Sequence record: PV231354.1
Length of the DNA stretch: 64,000 nucleotides
Direction: 5' to 3' (one strand)
Shown: in pieces, positions 37,248 through 44,047 of the stretch
Layout of the letters: every line of letters begins with the position of its first letter
Position numbering within the stretch: position 1 is the first letter of the stretch
Notes under the pieces: generated by a model
Told to the model about the DNA's origin: nothing
Seen by the model: only the letters and a program-made list of their open reading frames with translations
Databases searched by the model: none
Made by a program: the position numbers and the translations under genes

Positions 37248-37494
37248 AGGTGATCCTGTAGGGCAGGCCGCCGACGCAAATCTTGCCCCGGAGCCCGCTG
37301 GCGGTGGTGAAGGAAAAGCCCTGGCGGCCTTTGGTCCCGGCGCAGCCGAACCAGCGGCGATGGAAGCTGACGATCTGAGAGCCGGTGTCGCGCTCGACAA
37401 GCCGCCGGGCGTGGTTGCCTTCCCAGCCGAGCGCCATCATCCCGATCGTCAGGAAGAAAACGCCCAGCGCGAACGTAGCCCAGACGGACCTCAC
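37237..37494 (-). CDS. Small exported/membrane protein
   Basis: N-terminal hydrophobic helix, two Cys. Confidence 0.65.
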   Translation of the reverse strand: MRSVWATFALGVFFLTIGMMALGWEGNHARRLVERDTGSQIVSFHRRWFGCAGTKGRQGFSFTTASGLRGKICVGGLPYRITYDR

Positions 37495-37871
37495 GCGGCG
37501 ACGAACCCGGCGATCACGTCGGCGACGACGCGGCGCTTCTCGACCGGCATGCTGGCCAGGGCCAGGATCGTGCCGGCGCCGATCTGGGCGACGGCGCTTT
37601 CCAGGTCGGCGCGACCGTCGGTCATGAAGGTCGGATCATCGACCGGCGGATAGAAGCTCTCGATCGGCTGCTTGAGGAAGCGGGCCGCGTCGTAGAGCTT
37701 GGAGGACGAGATGCGGTTGTCGCCGCGCTCGTACTTCTGGACCTGCTGGAACGTGATGCCCAGGGCGTTGGCCAGATCGCCTTGCGAATAGCCGGCGGCC
37801 TTGCGGGTGTTGCGCAGCTTCTGACCGACGTACTTGTCGACCGGGTGCGGGGTCTTGTCTTCGTCAGCCAT
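37491..37871 (-). CDS. XRE-family HTH transcriptional regulator
   Basis: HPVDKYVGQKLR...SQGDLANALGITFQQVQKYERGDNRISSSKL. Confidence 0.92.
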   Translation of the reverse strand: MADEDKTPHPVDKYVGQKLRNTRKAAGYSQGDLANALGITFQQVQKYERGDNRISSSKLYDAARFLKQPIESFYPPVDDPTFMTDGRADLESAVAQIGAGTILALASMPVEKRRVVADVIAGFVAA

Positions 37872-38847
37872 TGGCGGCTTCCTCCTTCTTTTGCTGGCGG
37901 GCCTTGCGGCGGTGCGTGTAGGCCGCGCGCAGGGCCTGGGTGGTGTCGTCGTGCGCGCCCAGGTCAATCCCATCGGGCGCGACGACGCTGTTCTTCAGGC
38001 CGAACCGGTAGCCCTCGGCCTCCAGTTCGTAGAGCGCCTGCTCTTCGTGCATCTGGGCGAGGTGGCGGTAGTATTCCGCCAGGGCCAGTTCGTAGTCGCC
38101 CAGGAAGAGCCGCGCATTGCGCTCGGTCCCGGCGACCTCGGCGCGGAAGGTGAGCAGGAACCGACCAGGACCGACATGCGTCAGCTTGTAGCCGGTCTCG
38201 GCCAGGACCTCCTCGACGGTCTTGACGACCTCGTAGATGTGGAAGGTCCACACCGACTCGATGTGGGTGTCGTGGTAGAGGTACTCGTGCTCGGGCTTCT
38301 GCTCGCCGATGTAGGGACCCCACTTGTGGTAGCGCCAGCCGCCGCGATCGGGCTGGTGCTCGCGGCGCACCTCGACCATCGAGATGAAGTAGTTGGTGTC
38401 GGGGTCGTCGATCAAATCCGGGATCAGCGCCAGCAGTTGCTCGGGGCCGTCACAGACGCCGTAGCTGTCGATAGGCTCGGCGATGCGCTTGTAGCCCTCG
38501 GCCACCGGCGGCAGGTCCTCGTTCTCCAGGTCGCCGACGACCTCGATCTTGTACTTGTCGTGCAGGAGCTTGATGCGCGCCTCGCGGCGCTCACCATCGG
38601 CCTTGATCCAGGCGCGGAACGCATCGGTGCGCTCCTCCTCGGTCTGGCCGGCCTTGTACTCAGGCCCCCAGCGGCCCCACTTGTCCTCGATCTTCTCGAC
38701 GATCTCGTACTCGGGGTTCCAGGAGCCGAGGGCGAAGACGCCCTGGGCCAGCCGCTTGGGAAAGCCCGAGCGCTTGGTGCTCTCGGCGATCATGCGGGCG
38801 ATGGGATCGACGGCCGAGGCCGGGCGCGGGGTGATGTCGTAGAGCAT
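37864..38847 (-). CDS. hypothetical protein
   Basis: Coupled ORF; GWRYHKWGPYIG motif. Confidence 0.75.
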   Translation of the reverse strand: MLYDITPRPASAVDPIARMIAESTKRSGFPKRLAQGVFALGSWNPEYEIVEKIEDKWGRWGPEYKAGQTEEERTDAFRAWIKADGERREARIKLLHDKYKIEVVGDLENEDLPPVAEGYKRIAEPIDSYGVCDGPEQLLALIPDLIDDPDTNYFISMVEVRREHQPDRGGWRYHKWGPYIGEQKPEHEYLYHDTHIESVWTFHIYEVVKTVEEVLAETGYKLTHVGPGRFLLTFRAEVAGTERNARLFLGDYELALAEYYRHLAQMHEEQALYELEAEGYRFGLKNSVVAPDGIDLGAHDDTTQALRAAYTHRRKARQQKKEEAANG

Positions 38848-39224: not shown

Positions 39225-39257
39225 AAAAAGAAACCGCCGACCCGAAGGCCGGCGGTT
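39225..39257 (-). terminator. Rho-independent terminator
   Basis: AACCGCCG-GCC-TTCG-GGT-CGGCGGTT (C-UUCG-G loop) then TCTTTTT. Confidence 0.88.
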
Positions 39258-39277: not shown

Positions 39278-41137
39278 CTAGACGTCGAGGATGAAGAAGC
39301 GCTCGCTGGACGGGCCGTCGACCTCGACGATGAAGCCCGCCTCCAGCAGCGCCTCGATCGCCTTGCCGGTGTGGTAGAGCGACAGGTCGGACGCTTCGCT
39401 GATCCGGGCCAGCGAGAAGCCGACGTTCTGACCAACCTTGAGGTCTTGCAGCGACAGTTCGTTCAGGGTGGTGATCACCGCCCCGGCCGGGGCCAGTTCA
39501 TACGCGCCTTCGAAGTCGCGATCCTCCGACAGACGCACGAGGCCTTCCTGCTCGATATTGTCGAGCAGCGAGGCCAGGAACTCGGGATCGACGAAGCCGA
39601 CGTGGCTGCGGATTTCGCTCAGGTAGGCCGGGCCGTCGACGTCGACGGCGTTGAGGACCGCCAGCAGGGCGATGCCCGGCATGACCGCCACGACTTGCTC
39701 GGCCTTCTCCTCCTCGGAGATGTCGATCGGCACGCCCCCGCCGTTCGACAGAGGCACGATGGCTTCGTCCGGATGCAGGAGGATGAAGTCCTTGATCGCC
39801 CGCAGCGCCGCCAGGAAATGGTCCTTGGGGATTTCGTCGAGCTTGAAGGTGATGCGATCGTCGATGCCCATGGGATAGAGCGCCCGCAGATTGGCGACGA
39901 TGTCCTCGGGCCACGCGGCGAGCACCGTGTCCCAGAGAACCTTGGGCATCTGGAAGGCCCCGAAAGACAGGAACTGGTCGGGGGTGGCGGCTTCGACCGC
40001 AGCGATGGACTCGTCGATGCTGGCGGGCGTGTAGCCGCCCACGACGCCGTTTTGCGTCGCGTGGAGCACCTCGGCGGCTTCCTCGGCGCTCAGCCCCGTG
40101 ATGACCTTTTCCACGCCCTCCTCGGGCTCCTGGAGCGGCTCCAGGGTCTTGAGGCGATCGCTCAGGCCCTGGATCGACTCGTAGGCGTCGGTCGTGTCGA
40201 CGGCGAGCTTCAGGGTCAGGCGCTCGGGGCGGGCGCTGAACTCCTCGCCCGTGATGGTGTAGACGCCCTCGCGCTCCAGGATTTCCAGGTTCAGGAAGCG
40301 CCCCGTGTCGTTGAGGGCGCGGAAGCGCGCGTAGAGCATGTCCTGCTCAGTCAGATCGGTGAAGATGCCCTTGTCGAGCGCGAACAGCAGTTCGCTGCTG
40401 GAGAGGGTCTGCTCGCCCATGCCGGAGACCTCCTCGGGCTGGTCCTTCGTGAACCTCAGGCCCGGCCCGGTGGTCTCGGTTTCTTGAGGGATGATGGGGT
40501 CTTCGATCACGGGGGCTTTCTCCTTGAAAACGATGGAGGTCAGTTCGCTCAGCGAGACCGACCAGTTGGTGTCGACCTGGGCGGCGTAGCGGCCCGACAT
40601 GGGGTTCCAGGCGACCTTGCCGATCTCGCCGCTGACCATCTTGTCCTCCCAGGCCGAGCGGAACATCACGTCGGCGCCGCCGAAGTAGTCCGTCAGGTGG
40701 CCCGCGAAGGTCTCGATGTCCTCGCGGGACGCCGGGCGCACCTCGCGCAGCGGGTAGGAATGGTGGACGCCGGGGCGCGCGTCTTCGATCTCGACGAAGA
40801 TCGGCCCGTGGTCGGTGTGGAAGCGCTCGGTGTAGCCGATCATCTCGCCTTGCGGGGTCATGACCATCACCGGCAGGGCCGAGAACTTGTGGTTCAGGCG
40901 GTCCACGTAGTCGCTGGGATAGGCGGTGGTGGTGTAGATGAGGTTGTCGCCCCGGCGCACGCCGCTGTAGTCGACGACGCAGAGCGGCGTGGCCACCGCA
41001 CCGCTCGGGAAGCGCGGCCGATCAACGAACACTTGCCCGTCCGCCACCGGCGGGGAGACGCCGTGAACGTAGGGGACCACCTCGCTGTAGGTGGCGATCC
41101 AGGCGGGCTTGACCCGGTCAAGGAAGGTTTCGGTCAA
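39278..41137 (-). CDS. Large acidic hypothetical protein with two C-terminal winged-helix-like segments
   Basis: 619 aa; LLDNIEQEGLV and IEALLEAGFI segments. Confidence 0.75.
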   Translation of the reverse strand: MTETFLDRVKPAWIATYSEVVPYVHGVSPPVADGQVFVDRPRFPSGAVATPLCVVDYSGVRRGDNLIYTTTAYPSDYVDRLNHKFSALPVMVMTPQGEMIGYTERFHTDHGPIFVEIEDARPGVHHSYPLREVRPASREDIETFAGHLTDYFGGADVMFRSAWEDKMVSGEIGKVAWNPMSGRYAAQVDTNWSVSLSELTSIVFKEKAPVIEDPIIPQETETTGPGLRFTKDQPEEVSGMGEQTLSSSELLFALDKGIFTDLTEQDMLYARFRALNDTGRFLNLEILEREGVYTITGEEFSARPERLTLKLAVDTTDAYESIQGLSDRLKTLEPLQEPEEGVEKVITGLSAEEAAEVLHATQNGVVGGYTPASIDESIAAVEAATPDQFLSFGAFQMPKVLWDTVLAAWPEDIVANLRALYPMGIDDRITFKLDEIPKDHFLAALRAIKDFILLHPDEAIVPLSNGGGVPIDISEEEKAEQVVAVMPGIALLAVLNAVDVDGPAYLSEIRSHVGFVDPEFLASLLDNIEQEGLVRLSEDRDFEGAYELAPAGAVITTLNELSLQDLKVGQNVGFSLARISEASDLSLYHTGKAIEALLEAGFIVEVDGPSSERFFILDV

Positions 41138-41146
41138 GGCGGTCCC

Positions 41147-41611
41147 CTATTCGTTTGGAATGACGGACGCCGGGGCGTCCAGGTCGAAATTCTCGCCCTC
41201 ATCGGTGAGGGCGAAGGTGGCGTAGCCGTCAGGGCTCTTGACCATGGTCAGCAGCTTGATCAGGCCGTGCTTCTCCAGCGCCTGGGCGGCGGGATAGTCG
41301 GCGTGCTTGTAGAAGACGTTGAGTTGCCCGCCTCGGCCCAGGATGCGCACGCTGCGCAGCAGCATGGCCTCCTGTTCGCTCAGCCCCAGCGCGCCCTTGA
41401 TCCGCACGCGGGCGAGATGGACGTCGATCACGTGCGTCTGGCCCTGGTGCTCGAACTCGATGATCGCCAGCGGGCCGAACGATCCGTTGGTCACCGCCAG
41501 GACGACGCCCTCGAACTCGGTCGTTTTCCGCGCCGTGATGGGCACATAGTAGTCGAAGAAGACCGTCTTGCCCTTCATCACGTGGTGGGCCTGGGGCGCG
41601 ACCGTGCTCAT
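41147..41611 (-). CDS. hypothetical protein (beta-rich N-terminus plus winged-helix-like C-terminus)
   Basis: AAQALEKHGLIKL...FALTDEG. Confidence 0.68.
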   Translation of the reverse strand: MSTVAPQAHHVMKGKTVFFDYYVPITARKTTEFEGVVLAVTNGSFGPLAIIEFEHQGQTHVIDVHLARVRIKGALGLSEQEAMLLRSVRILGRGGQLNVFYKHADYPAAQALEKHGLIKLLTMVKSPDGYATFALTDEGENFDLDAPASVIPNE

Positions 41612-41859
41612 GCCGTGGGGTCCTTCTTGCGGGCGGTGTAGTGGAACTCGTCGTGCATGCGCCCGTCCAGGGTGACCTCGTAGCCGGGACCCAGTTCAGC
41701 CAGGATGCGCGCCTCGATCTCGGAGAAGTCGATGTTGGCCATTGCGCGCTCGGCCGCCGCCGCCTGCTCCAGGAAGCTGCTCCTGATCTTGGCGCCGGCC
41801 TCGGTGCGGATCGGGATGTTCTGGATGGGCGGCTCGGACTTGGACAGACGCTCGCTCAT
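41608..41859 (-). CDS. 83-aa mini DNA polymerase A palm-motif protein
   Basis: RLSKSEPPIQNIPIRTEAGAKIRSSF, IDFSEIEARILA, MHDEF; coupled on both sides (ATGA overlaps). Confidence 0.75.
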   Translation of the reverse strand: MSERLSKSEPPIQNIPIRTEAGAKIRSSFLEQAAAAERAMANIDFSEIEARILAELGPGYEVTLDGRMHDEFHYTARKKDPTA

Positions 41860-42407
41860 CAGGCCCTCTTGATCTTGCCGACGTGCGAGGGGCGCGTGGC
41901 GGCCTTGTAGACGAACGGGCGATAGGCCACGCGGTGGTGCTCGATGCAGTAGACGCCCTGCTCGGTGCGGCACCCGCAATGGCCGAAGTTCTGGTCGGTC
42001 GGATCGCCGTAGGGCCAGCGGCACATGCCGCGCGTCAGCTTCAGCGTCGGGACCACGGTCTCGGGGCGCACCGGGATCGGCGCCTGACCCTCGGGGACCA
42101 GTTCGATCTTCGGCTTCGACGGCTTCTCGGCCTTGGGCTTGGTGACCTTCTTGGGCTTGGCGACCTTGACCTTCTTGATCTGGATGCCGTAGCCGCGCGT
42201 CTTCTTGCGGCGCTCCTGGAGCGGCAGGACCTTCTCGCCCAGTTCGCCCTTCTGGCGCAGGCGATCGCCCATGCCGCAGACGGCGCTCTTGCTGCGCGGC
42301 TCGCTCAGCATTTCCCCGATCTGCTTGGTCCCGACAGGCTCTGCCCAGAGCTTCTTCAGCAGGGCGATGTCCTCGGCCAGCCAATCCGACTTACGCTTCT
42401 TCACCAC
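41859..42407 (-). CDS. gcrA: GcrA-family cell-cycle regulator homologue
   Basis: WLAEDIALLKKLW...SKSAVCGMGDRL; C-terminal CRWPYGDP...CG...YCIEH...AY. Confidence 0.88.
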   Translation of the reverse strand: MVKKRKSDWLAEDIALLKKLWAEPVGTKQIGEMLSEPRSKSAVCGMGDRLRQKGELGEKVLPLQERRKKTRGYGIQIKKVKVAKPKKVTKPKAEKPSKPKIELVPEGQAPIPVRPETVVPTLKLTRGMCRWPYGDPTDQNFGHCGCRTEQGVYCIEHHRVAYRPFVYKAATRPSHVGKIKRA

Positions 42408-42415
42408 CTTGTACG

Positions 42416-42601
42416 CTACTCCTGTTCTGCTTTGGCGGGACGCCGGCTTCTGGACTGACGCGGGACGAACACCAGGGCGACGGTCGAGCCGCCGGTGTAC
42501 TTGGTGCGGCGGCTATAGAGCCAACCGCCCTCGATTTCCAGGCGCTCGGTCACCTGACCATCGCCCTCGTCGATCTTTTCCCATTTCGTCTTCTTGGCCA
42601 T
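42416..42601 (-). CDS. Small hypothetical protein
   Basis: GAGGAG RBS; TERLEIEGGWLY. Confidence 0.72.
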   Translation of the reverse strand: MAKKTKWEKIDEGDGQVTERLEIEGGWLYSRRTKYTGGSTVALVFVPRQSRSRRPAKAEQE

Positions 42602-42603
42602 GA

Positions 42604-42653
42604 CGCTCCTCGATTTTCGCCGGCACCCTAGAGGAGCGCCGATGTGTTGACAA
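42604..42653 (-). promoter_or_regulatory. Leftward promoter of divergent pair
   Basis: TTGTCA-N17-TAGGGT with an 8-bp inverted repeat covering the RBS. Confidence 0.68.
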
Positions 42654-42666
42654 GCGCCAAATGGCT

Positions 42667-42724
42667 CTGGCTGGCGAGTGTTGACAAGGCGGCGGTGGTC
42701 CCTTAGAAGGGCGGCGACGACAAC
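42667..42724 (+). promoter_or_regulatory. Rightward promoter of divergent pair
   Basis: CTGGC-N6-GTG-TTGACA-N17-TAGAAG, CGACGACAAC. Confidence 0.85.
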
Positions 42725-42738
42725 GAAAGGAGGCGCCG

Positions 42739-43038
42739 ATGCGCTACGTTCTGGAGTACATGGACTGCGACGACCAGATCGTCCAGGTCGACTTCGAAGC
42801 CCCCACCCGCGCCTCGGCGATCGCCAAGGCCAAGCGCCTCTTCGTGAAGGCGGTCGAGGCCAGCGGCCGGTCGATCTTCACCGGCTACATGTTCGAGGAC
42901 CACTCGATCACCATGAAGGTGAAGCTGGTCCCGTTCGGCACCCTGAGCCGCTACCTGGGCCTGGGCAAGGTCACCGCCGCTAACATCTCGTTCGACGACC
43001 GCGACGCCAAGATCGCCCGCCAGGACATGGCCGCATGA
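42739..43038 (+). CDS. hypothetical protein
   Basis: GGAGG RBS; first gene after a promoter. Confidence 0.75.
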   Translation: MRYVLEYMDCDDQIVQVDFEAPTRASAIAKAKRLFVKAVEASGRSIFTGYMFEDHSITMKVKLVPFGTLSRYLGLGKVTAANISFDDRDAKIARQDMAA

Positions 43039-43247
43039 TCCGGGTCGAGGACGTTCAGCCCGGCTTCATCTATCGCGGCGGCAAGAGCGGCGCACTGCGT
43101 CAAGTGGTCAGCTACGGCGCCAACGAGAGCTTCGTCTGCTGGGCCAACCCGCACGATCGCCTGCCCTATGGCGGCTTCCTCAACACCACCTGCACCAGCC
43201 GGGCGTCCTTCGCTCGCTGGGCCGACAAGATCGAGGAAGAGGTTTGA
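43035..43247 (+). CDS. hypothetical protein
   Basis: ATGA overlap. Confidence 0.7.
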   Translation: MIRVEDVQPGFIYRGGKSGALRQVVSYGANESFVCWANPHDRLPYGGFLNTTCTSRASFARWADKIEEEV

Positions 43248-43531
43248 TCACCACCTTCCTGCGCTGCACCCATCGCGACGAGGCCGGCCGCCGGTACTTC
43301 GAGTTCCGCGAGCCCGACCTCGTCCAGCGCCTCTATGTCCGCAAGCCGCAGACCGAATGGGAAGAAGGCTTCCCGATCATCCTGGAGGACTTCTACAACG
43401 GCTCCTCTGGCGGCAAGACCCTGTACCGCGCCGGCAAGACCCAGGGCCTGGGGATCAGCGCGTTCTTCCGCGCCTTCCCCGAGGTCTTCACCCTGATCGT
43501 CCTGCCTCAGGAGGTGCTCGATGCCGCGTAA
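43244..43531 (+). CDS. hypothetical protein
   Basis: TTGA overlap. Confidence 0.68.
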   Translation: MITTFLRCTHRDEAGRRYFEFREPDLVQRLYVRKPQTEWEEGFPIILEDFYNGSSGGKTLYRAGKTQGLGISAFFRAFPEVFTLIVLPQEVLDAA

Positions 43532-43784
43532 GAAACGCCCCGACCTGCCCGTCACCGTCGCCGACCTCAAGGCGTACCTGGACAAGTTCCCGGACGACAT
43601 GAAGGTCGGCATCCGCAGCGGCGGTGGTCGCTTCACCGGCTTCACCGAGGTCGAGGTGTACAACCTCACCACCTATGGCTCGGCGAGCGATCGCCTGACC
43701 ATGGAGACCTCGCGTGGGGCCACCATCTTCAAAGGCTACAAGGGTAAGATTTCCGCGCCCTTCGACGCCCTCATTTTCGACTAG
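43521..43784 (+). CDS. hypothetical protein
   Basis: GGAGG RBS; VTVADLKAYLDKFPDDMKV. Confidence 0.72.
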   Translation: MPRKKRPDLPVTVADLKAYLDKFPDDMKVGIRSGGGRFTGFTEVEVYNLTTYGSASDRLTMETSRGATIFKGYKGKISAPFDALIFD

Positions 43785-43792
43785 GAGGGACC

Positions 43793-44047
43793 ATGAGCAA
43801 CCGCGTTTGGATCGAACTGGAAAAGCCCAAGACGGCCGAAGAAGGCAAGGCGCGCGCCGCGCTGCTCTGCAAGATGCTCGCCCGCCTGGGCGTCGAGTAC
43901 GGCCGCTATCCCGCCGTCTTCTGGAGCGAGCGCGACGGCAACTACGCCTTCACCCTCGACGGCGCCGGCAGCTACGCCGTCTGCGAGGGCGCCGAGCCCG
44001 GCCACTGGTACAACCTGGACTCCATCATCGAGGCGTTCGAGGCGTGA
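43793..44047 (+). CDS. hypothetical protein
   Basis: GGAGG RBS. Confidence 0.72.
   Translation: MSNRVWIELEKPKTAEEGKARAALLCKMLARLGVEYGRYPAVFWSERDGNYAFTLDGAGSYAVCEGAEPGHWYNLDSIIEAFEA

Follow-up and report, generated by a model that had tools for sequence, protein, structure and literature searches.

A small gene next to gcrA in a phiCbK-like Caulobacter phage encodes a stand-alone protein of 83 aa, here called mini-PolA, and profile comparisons show that it derives from a family-A DNA polymerase of the bacterial type. Substitution patterns give solid support for its maintenance by purifying selection, as opposed to decay. As the best explanation we infer, at a probability of roughly 40%, that mini-PolA is an exapted, non-catalytic fragment of DNA polymerase I (Pol I) which would act by binding during early takeover of the host. 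The gene lies in a stretch of 64,000 nucleotides from sequence record PV231354.1 (the window), which matches phage RBC63 at 100%.

Homology to DNA polymerase I and organization of the locus

Residues 4-56 of mini-PolA aligned with positions 120-170 of 381 in the Pfam family DNA_pol_A (PF00476; E=1.3e-12), with a score of 47.9 bits, which exceeds the gathering score of 34.3. A custom PolA HMM made from 75 bacterial sequences gave E=5e-21, and phmmer against the PDB aligned mini-PolA with solved Pol I chains at the segment from TGRLSS to motif A. By these matches, which are far above chance, residues 4-56 are significantly homologous to the pre-motif A and motif A regions of family-A polymerases, as had been proposed in an earlier reading of the DNA made without database searches (the sequence-only reading). 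In the alignment, NIDFSEIEAR of mini-PolA corresponds to ADYSQIELR of PolA, and motif A is present with its catalytic Asp. Eighteen PolA-invariant positions are retained, including R4, Q13, N14, R18, D44, E49 and R51; the last three, equivalent to Klenow D705, E710 and R712, are invariant among the orthologues, and the N-terminal block corresponds to Klenow R668-G686 by chain numbering. Other substitutions are family-specific and fixed in all lineages (N to P at position 11, S to K at 7, Y to F at 45, Q to E at 47). This combination of retained PolA-invariant residues and fixed substitutions of its own points to a constraint that is new but stable. Identity to bacterial Pol I over residues 4-56 was 49-58%, with no special affinity to the Caulobacterales within a PolA sample that came from a genome scan picking up only sequences containing NIPIRTEA, the host PolA lying outside this comparison.

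The Pfam match is a single short stretch of the profile and the sole one found, and the thumb, the fingers with motif B, the exonuclease domain and everything N-terminal are missing, in line with the sequence-only reading. Nothing precedes TGRLSS, and 83 aa leave no room for motif B and the O-helix. Because fingers and thumb are absent, mini-PolA is not a polymerase, and the earlier statement that such a protein cannot polymerise holds.

Table 1. Positions of mini-PolA, its segments and the surrounding operon features within the window.
Feature	Position	Strand	Description
Divergent intergenic region	42602..42738	.	Two CTTGTCAACAC copies, 42644-42654 and 42678-42688
g61	42416..42601	(-)	Operon gene 1; ORF, PHROG 14288
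Phage gcrA	41859..42407	(-)	182 aa; adjoins mini-PolA upstream; Pfam GcrA E=8e-21
mini-PolA ORF	41608..41859	(-)	83 aa and stop; orthologue of phiCbK gp221, member of PHROG 12116
N block, residues 1-22	41794..41859	(-)	MSERLSKSEPPIQNIPIRTEAG; equivalent of the PolA TGRLSSxxPNLQNIPxRTxxG loop
Variable linker, residues 23-34	41758..41793	(-)	Within long predicted helix
Motif A block, residues 35-58	41686..41757	(-)	AAERAMANIDFSEIEARILAELGP; HMM alignment to ADYSQIELRILAHL
Tail, residues 59-83	41611..41685	(-)	Predicted beta-hairpin, strands 60-68 and 71-78, H69-D70 at tip
DGRxHDEF island, residues 65-72	41644..41667	(-)	Constrained core of the tail
g154	41147..41611	(-)	Downstream of mini-PolA; ORF, PHROG 11942
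g619	39278..41137	(-)	Final operon gene; PHROG 12845; fast-evolving
Terminator-like hairpin	39232..39257	(-)	End of five-gene operon; 11-bp stem with 8 G-C pairs, then T run

The mini-PolA reading frame is uninterrupted over 83 aa, has a coding-type GC3 of 0.92 similar to that of the adjoining genes, and matches PHROG 12116 over positions 1-81 of 81 (E=4.7e-50). Its ATG overlaps the gcrA stop codon by one base (TGATG) and its own stop overlaps the ATG of g154 (ATGA); both overlaps are retained in every lineage examined. An intact ORF, translationally coupled between gcrA and the next gene and third from the leftward divergent promoter, had been described in the sequence-only reading; the intact frame, the overlaps on both sides and the third place from the divergent intergenic region, after g61 and gcrA, were confirmed. 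The five genes form a clade-specific operon in the order g61-gcrA-miniPolA-g154-g619, whose fourth member showed no Pfam, PDB or PolA similarity. A terminator is annotated in CcrSwift and CcrKarma at the place equivalent to the hairpin in Table 1. At the other end, the CTTGTCAACAC motif of the divergent intergenic region has eight occurrences in the window, where 0.5 would be expected, and the aligned sites have a -35/-10-like arrangement, marking the region as a probable promoter on sequence grounds. Exactly the same 26 phage records carry gcrA and mini-PolA, and g619 is present in these 26 as well. As all carriers of this gene pair belong to a single clade, their joint occurrence does not count independently towards a functional link.

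Conservation and predicted structure

Orthologues of mini-PolA were found in 26 of 26 phiCbK-type records, in three lineages, with start and end fixed and with synteny downstream of gcrA in nine loci. Changes in length are limited to a 5-aa in-frame deletion in the linker, seen in phage BL57, and to two C-terminal residues. The dN/dS ratio was 0.17-0.31 (Fisher p 3-5e-4 in each deep comparison), and three islands with pN/pS of about 0.10-0.17 and pS of 0.32-0.59 are separated by a neutral linker. Across three lineages, the N block keeps 19 of its 22 positions unchanged (pN/pS 0.11, pS 0.37), the motif A block 20 of 24 (pN/pS 0.17) and the DGRxHDEF island seven of eight (pN/pS 0.10, pS 0.59); the linker retains two of 12 (pN/pS 1.18). 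Low pN/pS at normal pS argues that the protein, rather than the DNA, is constrained. At the amino-acid level mini-PolA is 72-77% identical between lineages, compared with 62-66% for GcrA, 66-72% for g61, 38-45% for g154 and 35-44% for g619 (the last between phage genera), which makes it the best conserved of the five genes in this fast-evolving operon. The earlier judgement that the gene is not a product of random decay is upheld by the dN/dS values (p ~4e-4) and by the fixed ends in all 26 records.

A pseudogene or decaying remnant was considered and rejected, since neither neutral evolution nor variable ends were seen and all indels are in frame.

Structure prediction did not return the mini palm sheet that had been expected from the sequence-only reading. 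In two independent AlphaFold runs of moderate confidence, the N block was modelled as a coil, followed by two helices and a single hairpin; a helix is predicted in place of the beta-strand of motif A, which is absent from the models. The N block is predicted to be unstructured (pLDDT 50-66), and the overall tertiary arrangement is weakly supported (pTM 0.39-0.43). BFVD returned the orthologue alone, with a packing different from that of the AlphaFold model (TM 0.33). Foldseek found no match with E<1 in the PDB and no polymerase among the 50 matches listed.

The C-terminal tail was the point on which the earlier proposal of joined palm motifs A and C depended, with RMHDEFHY taken as motif C. 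None of the HMMER searches (Pfam, phmmer against the PDB, the 75-sequence PolA HMM) aligned any residue beyond 56-57, so that of the predicted hits those to pre-motif A and motif A were obtained and the one to motif C was not; the tail alone gave top scores of ~0 bits against the PolA HMM. Four readings of the tail were tried by PSSM and hhalign, and none was decisive. Placed as the strand preceding TGRLSS in PolA, an arrangement resembling a circular permutation, it scored 17.2 bits, which one of 250 shuffles reached, and when matched in colinear order to the GYVETxxGR hairpin and VHDEL it scored 19.6 bits (3/250 shuffles), both being weak matches; weakest was its placement immediately after motif A, with a score reached by 11 of 250 shuffles. 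With hhalign, the tail matched the pre-TGRLSS strand at E=0.004 and motif C at E=0.019, each at a probability below 10%. The three weak placements on PolA score about equally and are mutually incompatible, and neither the motif C assignment nor the joining of motifs A and C can be regarded as established. The same applies to the view that both catalytic aspartates are kept: D44 of motif A is invariant, while the second Asp depends on the motif C assignment. The HDE of mini-PolA is itself invariant and placed at the tip of the predicted hairpin, and this His-Asp-tipped hairpin, as modelled, fits motif C without proving it.

Possible functions of mini-PolA

Phage genomes encode many small early proteins that disable or redirect host machinery. 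If mini-PolA is an exapted Pol I fragment, it would be a binding module rather than an enzyme. Its N-terminal loop of 22 residues, the most constrained part of mini-PolA, is predicted to lack order when alone, and the protein as a whole is acidic, at a pI of about 5. On these grounds we propose that mini-PolA may fold onto a partner. Mini-PolA might then compete with, or mimic, the matching surface of host Pol I, and candidate partners would be a protein that reads this surface or a metal-bound DNA 3' end. Such binding could take place during early phage reprogramming of the non-replicating swarmer cell, alongside the phage GcrA. A dominant-negative binder, the alternative offered in the sequence-only reading, is also possible. 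The pI of mini-PolA lies at 4.9-5.3, and its net negative charge speaks against simple DNA binding.

A more specific form of the same idea, that mini-PolA is a small early mimic of the Pol I palm made of a host-type active-site fragment of ~55 residues and a short His-Asp-Glu hairpin, is in our estimate unlikely but compatible with the evidence. Such a mimic might block or hijack a reader of that surface, for which host factors, DNA 3' ends and immune sensors are conceivable, and the architecture of mini-PolA is possibly that of a circularly permuted or doubly deleted mini-palm. Mini-PolA would in that case be a founding example of mimics made from enzyme active-site fragments in phage host takeover; a binding surface cut from a host-type enzyme would constitute a new route to phage inhibitors, and a further Pol I partner might be revealed. 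Mini-PolA has an origin traceable to one segment of the Pol I active site and a clear signature of selection, and it can be studied in the genetically tractable model pair of phiCbK and Caulobacter crescentus.

Alternatively, mini-PolA could be a small acidic accessory of a phage module for GcrA and RNA polymerase takeover, working with GcrA, g154 or g619 so that transcription of the host is redirected, its polymerase ancestry being irrelevant. The strict co-occurrence with gcrA in 26 genomes, the conserved start/stop overlap, the clade-specific nature of the entire operon and the presence of the early regulator tgrL in the adjoining transcription unit are all consistent with such a role. However, the co-occurrence is phylogenetically non-independent, and the invariant residues of mini-PolA are those invariant in real PolA, which would not be expected if the ancestry were irrelevant; we consider an accessory role improbable, somewhat more so than a palm mimic.

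Still less probable is the anti-defence decoy proposed in the sequence-only reading, in which a mini-palm would mimic the polymerase surface sensed by a polymerase-triggered defence system such as Borvo and would titrate the sensor. Mutations in phage DNA polymerases do give escape from Borvo and AbiQ (PMC11348598), and mini-PolA is under selection in a probable early operon. Its sequence is nevertheless of the bacterial Pol I type, at the identities given above, and BLASTP showed no resemblance to the T7-like polymerase of the phage (best E=0.44). This weakens the case, since a decoy aimed at a sensor of the phage polymerase should look like that enzyme. A host-type Pol I would also give a defence system no cause to treat it as foreign. 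Moreover, PADLOC gave no match and no polymerase-like fold was predicted. To our knowledge, no polymerase-triggered defence system has been described in the Caulobacter host, which also counts against a decoy.

Mini-PolA could also be what is left, without function, of a polymerase gene that was lost or swapped, and be kept open solely by the translational coupling of gcrA to the downstream genes. Swapping of polymerases is common in phages (PMC11348598), and sporadic singleton ORFs of 59-79 aa that carry a PolA segment occur in metagenomic phage-like contigs. Coupling alone would not need the purifying selection seen on the amino acids, however, nor does a remnant agree with the fixed ends, with mini-PolA being the most conserved gene of the operon, or with a replication module about 70 kb away. 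The dN/dS values largely refute this explanation, and we regard it as very improbable. If mini-PolA were merely a tolerated leftover, the annotation "DNA polymerase" on proteins of ~80 residues, which misleads automated counts of polymerases, would need to be corrected.

Finally, a residual catalytic or metal-binding mini-enzyme, or one part of a split polymerase whose remainder is supplied by a second protein, is highly improbable: the carboxylates D44, E49, D70 and E71 are invariant together with H69, and the predicted hairpin has an H-D tip like that of the motif C hairpin, but proof that this hairpin equals motif C is lacking, the metagenomic analogue P0061 has no motif A Asp, no fingers or O-helix occur within the operon, and the search of the neighbouring genes for a missing polymerase piece yielded nothing with Pfam, PDB or PADLOC, g61, gcrA, g154 and g619 showing no PolA similarity in Pfam and E>0.2 against PolA in hhalign.

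Relation to known polymerases and phage proteins

Of the known proteins, bacterial Pol I (PF00476) shares with residues 4-56 of mini-PolA the primer-terminus loop and motif A of its palm, but has about 900 aa and a 5' nuclease, exonuclease, thumb, fingers and motif B, all of which are lacking in the 83 aa of mini-PolA. The phage's own T7-like replicative polymerase (phiCbK gp123; RBC63 94713-96959) belongs, like mini-PolA, to family A in the broad sense. No similarity between the two was detectable by BLASTP, and the equivalent loop reads NRASHSNPNIAQVPRV in the phage polymerase and not ERLSKSEPPIQNIPIRT; the T7-like polymerase is also conserved at 91-95% across the lineages in which mini-PolA is 72-77% identical. 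Polymerase swapping is frequent in phages, and some carry second, divergent PolA genes, of which divPolA1 is described as having a palm that conserves the main catalytic residues next to a truncated thumb and is concluded to be probably active as a polymerase (PMC11348598). Like mini-PolA, divPolA1/2 are extra family-A sequences beside the main phage polymerase; unlike divPolA1, mini-PolA has a homologous core of 55 residues and is incapable of polymerase activity.

Closer in size are the stand-alone PolA-segment ORFs of 59-79 aa from metagenomes (P0018, P0061, P0086, P0098 and P0106), found in a search biased towards that segment. They carry the same segment as mini-PolA (EPxLQNIP to the motif A helix), have phage-like neighbours and in some cases overlap the next gene, but they are singletons with unrelated tails, none of which contains DGRxHDEF, and in P0061 the motif A Asp has been lost. 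P0018 was examined as a possible second conserved family and rejected as a singleton. Among 1.84 billion representatives, E<1e-10 was reached by the mini-PolA family alone. An index of 5.8 billion proteins held two mini-PolA clusters only, both phiCbK-like, the IMG/VR matches were confined to Rogue, BL10 and Karma, and two scans of JGI metagenome contigs yielded no family member.

Literature searches found no study, published analysis or experiment on gp221. The existing names refer to its polymerase ancestry: "putative Pol I DNA polymerase, palm domain" for gp221 in GenBank, "DNA polymerase" for PHROG 12116, and "DNA-directed DNA polymerase family A palm domain" in UniRef. The phiCbK gp221 protein and its orthologues are of the same family as mini-PolA, with 67-100% identity, a length of 78-83 aa and the same position and overlaps after gcrA, and the mini-PolA of the window is the Poindextervirus (CcrRogue/RBC63) allele, with no substantive difference from the gp221 family.

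The polymerase I segment of mini-PolA

Over nucleotides 40000-44000 the window matches Caulobacter phage RBC63 (PV231352.1, 163935-167935) at 100% identity and CcrRogue at 98%, and the phage therefore belongs to the phiCbK-like giant siphophages of the Poindextervirus group. The sequence-only reading described an intact frame coupled between gcrA and the next gene. This description holds: the mini-PolA frame is uninterrupted, its ATG has one base in common with the stop codon of the upstream gcrA homolog (TGATG), the start codon of the following ORF overlaps its TGA stop (ATGA), and its codon-position GC (0.61/0.45/0.92) has the same profile as that of the neighboring genes. Mini-PolA is real and no artefact, and a name for it is already public. 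The phiCbK ortholog gp221 is labeled 'putative Pol I DNA polymerase, palm domain', the RBC63 and Rogue copies are labeled 'putative Pol I DNA polymerase', and the family corresponds to PHROG 12116 'DNA polymerase' (81 positions). Several records and this PHROG name a protein of 80 residues plainly 'DNA polymerase', a bare label that would inflate automated counts of phage polymerases. The 2012 genome paper treats the T7-like replicative polymerase and GcrA without gp221 (PMC3556154), and a literature search for gp221 or mini-PolA found no study of the protein.

Residues 4-56 match Pfam DNA_pol_A at positions 120-170 of 381 (E=1.3e-12; 47.9 bits, clearing the gathering threshold of 34.3), our own HMM built from 75 bacterial PolA genes (E=5e-21), and solved Pol I structures from TGRLSS through motif A, including positions 344-395 of the Klenow fragment chain. 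With these values, the homology claimed for pre-motif A and motif A, the first two-thirds of the original observation, is correct and far beyond chance. In a joint alignment of mini-PolA with 39 PolA fragments, 18 columns are invariant (R4, L5, P10, Q13, N14, I15, P16, I17, R18, T19, E20, A21, G22, F29, D44, E49, R51 and A54), while five near-invariant PolA positions are replaced and fixed in all phage lineages (G3E, S7K, N11P, Y45F, Q47E). The segment shares 49-58% identity with Pol I enzymes from many bacterial phyla, with no particular Caulobacterales affinity in a PolA sample that is biased by the search patterns and leaves out the host PolA. No similarity to the phage's own T7-like polymerase was detectable (best BLASTP E=0.44), and that enzyme differs strongly in the equivalent loop. 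Mini-PolA derives from a bacterial-type PolA, is under selection and does not qualify as a functional polymerase; it is best filed as a stand-alone fragment of a family-A polymerase.

Selection on the protein

By tblastn, mini-PolA occurs in 26 phage records, all phiCbK-type Caulobacter phages (67-100% identity), which form three lineages: the Rogue/BL10 group, the phiCbK/Swift/Karma group, and BL57. The start is identical in all lineages, the C-terminus varies by at most two residues, both gene overlaps are kept, and the sole internal length change is an in-frame five-residue deletion in BL57 within the variable linker. At dS of about 0.15-0.6, sequence pairs give dN/dS values of 0.17-0.31, and all three deep comparisons show a significant deficit of nonsynonymous change (Fisher p=2.5e-4 to 5e-4). 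Constraint is concentrated (pN/pS) in residues 1-22 (0.11), residues 35-58 (0.17) and DGRxHDEF at 65-72 (0.10), the linker 23-34 standing at 1.18. The constrained blocks show ordinary synonymous divergence (0.32-0.59), so it is the protein that is constrained, rather than an overlapping DNA or RNA signal. Mini-PolA is also the most conserved member of its operon, with between-lineage identity of 72-77% compared with 66-72% for g61, 62-66% for GcrA, 38-45% for g154 and 35-44% for g619. The suggestion that the gene is not random decay is thereby borne out: a decaying pseudogene is ruled out by the dN/dS values, the fixed ends and the top conservation, and a frame kept open only for translational coupling is ruled out by purifying selection at the protein level.

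The C-terminal tail

The sequence-only reading had further assigned RMHDEFHY to motif C and expected HMMER to recover pre-motif A, motif A and motif C. Pre-motif A and motif A were matched, and nothing aligned past residue 57 in the profile searches (Pfam, solved Pol I chains, 75-PolA HMM). The tail was scored on a position-specific matrix derived from 75 PolA sequences, taking the mean of the three phage lineages, with shuffled tail columns as the null. The 12-mer DGRMHDEFHYTA fits best to the PolA strand TGRIHTSFNQTI (17.2 bits, a score that 1 of 250 shuffles attains), which directly precedes TGRLSS in real PolA and would imply an arrangement resembling circular permutation. A colinear two-block chain, with GYEVTLDGR on the GYVETxxGR hairpin and MHDEF on motif C VHDEL, likewise stands above the null at 19.6 bits (3/250), while a contiguous reading of post-motif A sequence without an indel is weaker (11/250); the HMMER alignment runs on into the latter in the three best PolA hits. 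With hhalign the top match is the pre-TGRLSS strand (E=0.004), followed by motif C (E=0.019); neither reaches a probability of 10%.

AlphaFold was run twice, on 43 rows and on 4 rows from the family alone (pLDDT 77 and 72; pTM 0.43 and 0.39), and both models show a coil at 1-19, helices at 20-41 and 45/46-56, and a β-hairpin of 60-68 and 71-78 with H69-D70 at its tip. A His-Asp pair at a hairpin turn is the geometry of motif C in Pol I structures, and the predicted hairpin favors the motif C reading somewhat, short of proving homology. The mini palm sheet that had been expected did not appear, the models having neither a motif A β-strand nor any palm sheet. Foldseek against the PDB returned no polymerase and no hit with E<1, and a BFVD search returned solely an ortholog, packed differently (TM 0.33). 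The readings of the tail are mutually exclusive: derivation from motif C is the foremost candidate, if a tentative one, and a permuted pre-TGRLSS strand, diverged contiguous sequence, or a tail unrelated to PolA are each unlikely, to a similar degree.

Operon context, possible function and related ORFs

The leftward transcription unit runs in the order g61, gcrA, mini-PolA, g154 and g619. Exactly the same 26 phage records carry gcrA, mini-PolA and g619, and none of the three was found in Colossus-like Caulobacter or Brevundimonas phages, although these phages share the T7-like polymerase (73% identity in the Brevundimonas phage Bajun); this distribution suggests that the three genes form an accessory module confined to one clade. 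The last gene, g619, evolves very fast, at 35-44% identity between phage genera whose replicative polymerase is 91-95% identical. Early expression of the operon is plausible. An 11-mer (CCTGTCAACAC or CTTGTCAACAC) occurs 8 times in the window against 0.5 expected; on the opposite strand it reads GTGTTGACAGG (TTGACA -35), with a CCTAGAAG-like -10 about 17 nt on, and the sites probably represent early promoters of a host-type family. The divergent region ahead of the gcrA operon holds two of them. Five genes on from mini-PolA on the same strand, in the next leftward unit beyond the terminator, lies the ortholog of tgrL (CbK_gp216), an XRE-family transcription factor established experimentally as an early regulator (PMC10688885).

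Coordinates of mini-PolA, its surroundings and stand-alone PolA-segment ORFs on metagenomic contigs (L097-L104)
Feature	Position	Strand	Remark
Divergent intergenic region	42602-42738		start of leftward transcription unit
Mini-PolA	41608..41859	-	83 residues
g619	39278-41137	-	last operon gene
Terminator-like hairpin, strong	39257..39232	-	end of gcrA/mini-PolA unit
tgrL ortholog	about 37493-37873	-	converted from RBC63 annotation
11-mer sites	21344, 24670, 32724, 34875	+	
11-mer sites	42644, 42678, 52989, 61070	-	
P0018	L097 1422-1658		singleton
P0061	L099 2622-2861		Gly replaces motif A Asp
P0086	L104 3362-3547		
P0098	L103 43-225		
P0106	L102 147-326		
D12-class N6-adenine DNA methyltransferase	L103 222-1070		start overlapped by P0098

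In mini-PolA, constraint is strongest in the 22-residue primer-terminus loop, which by prediction would be disordered by itself, and the protein is acidic (pI 4.9-5.3). Taking Klenow to start at residue 324, the invariant R4, R18, D44 and E49 correspond to R668, R682, D705 and E710, which in Pol I lie around the 3' end of the primer and the metal site. Because of these features, mini-PolA may act by binding: it would fold onto a partner and compete with, or imitate, the palm surface of Pol I, possibly during early takeover of the non-replicating swarmer cell, beside the phage GcrA. For identity, selection and this mechanism combined we estimate a probability of about 0.4; confidence is high in identity and selection and low in the mechanism.

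A role as an accessory of the GcrA/RNA polymerase module is unlikely, though the foremost of the alternatives; the co-occurrence with gcrA is real but phylogenetically non-independent. Less probable again is the defense decoy proposed in the sequence-only reading. Its background is correct, in that phage polymerase mutations allow escape from Borvo (PMC11348598), but a decoy for a polymerase sensor should resemble the phage polymerase, which mini-PolA does not. Its likeness to host-type Pol I instead favors the second suggestion of that reading, that the protein competes with Pol I over a partner or a substrate, and a mimic would accordingly be one of host-type Pol I. A functionless remnant is very improbable given purifying selection on the amino-acid sequence. 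Residual catalysis or a split polymerase is scarcely credible, since the operon neighbors have neither PolA similarity nor recognizable domains in Pfam, hhalign, PHROG, PADLOC and PDB searches. Within a model pair of phage and host, mini-PolA offers a clean lead that can be tested.

In a 5.8-billion-protein index the family makes up only two clusters, both of them phiCbK-like; IMG/VR has it in three known genomes only, and no member was found in JGI metagenome contigs. In an exhaustive HMMER scan of 1.84 billion representatives, able to find only fragments containing this PolA segment, only the family itself scored below E=1e-10. Weaker hits include complete stand-alone ORFs of 59-79 residues with the same segment (EPxLQNIP to the motif A helix) in metagenomic phage-like contigs, beside ParB-like and helicase genes, a D12 adenine methyltransferase, or a PARP-domain gene. 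GcrA is a reader of adenine methylation, and the methyltransferase beside P0098, set against GcrA before mini-PolA, may be coincidence. These ORFs may be leftovers of polymerase loss and are a lead, not evidence. Unlike the conserved mini-PolA family, they have unrelated tails, and P0061, P0086, P0098 and P0106 were each found on one or two contigs only; P0018 has the PPIQ, DF and EAR substitutions in common with the phiCbK family.
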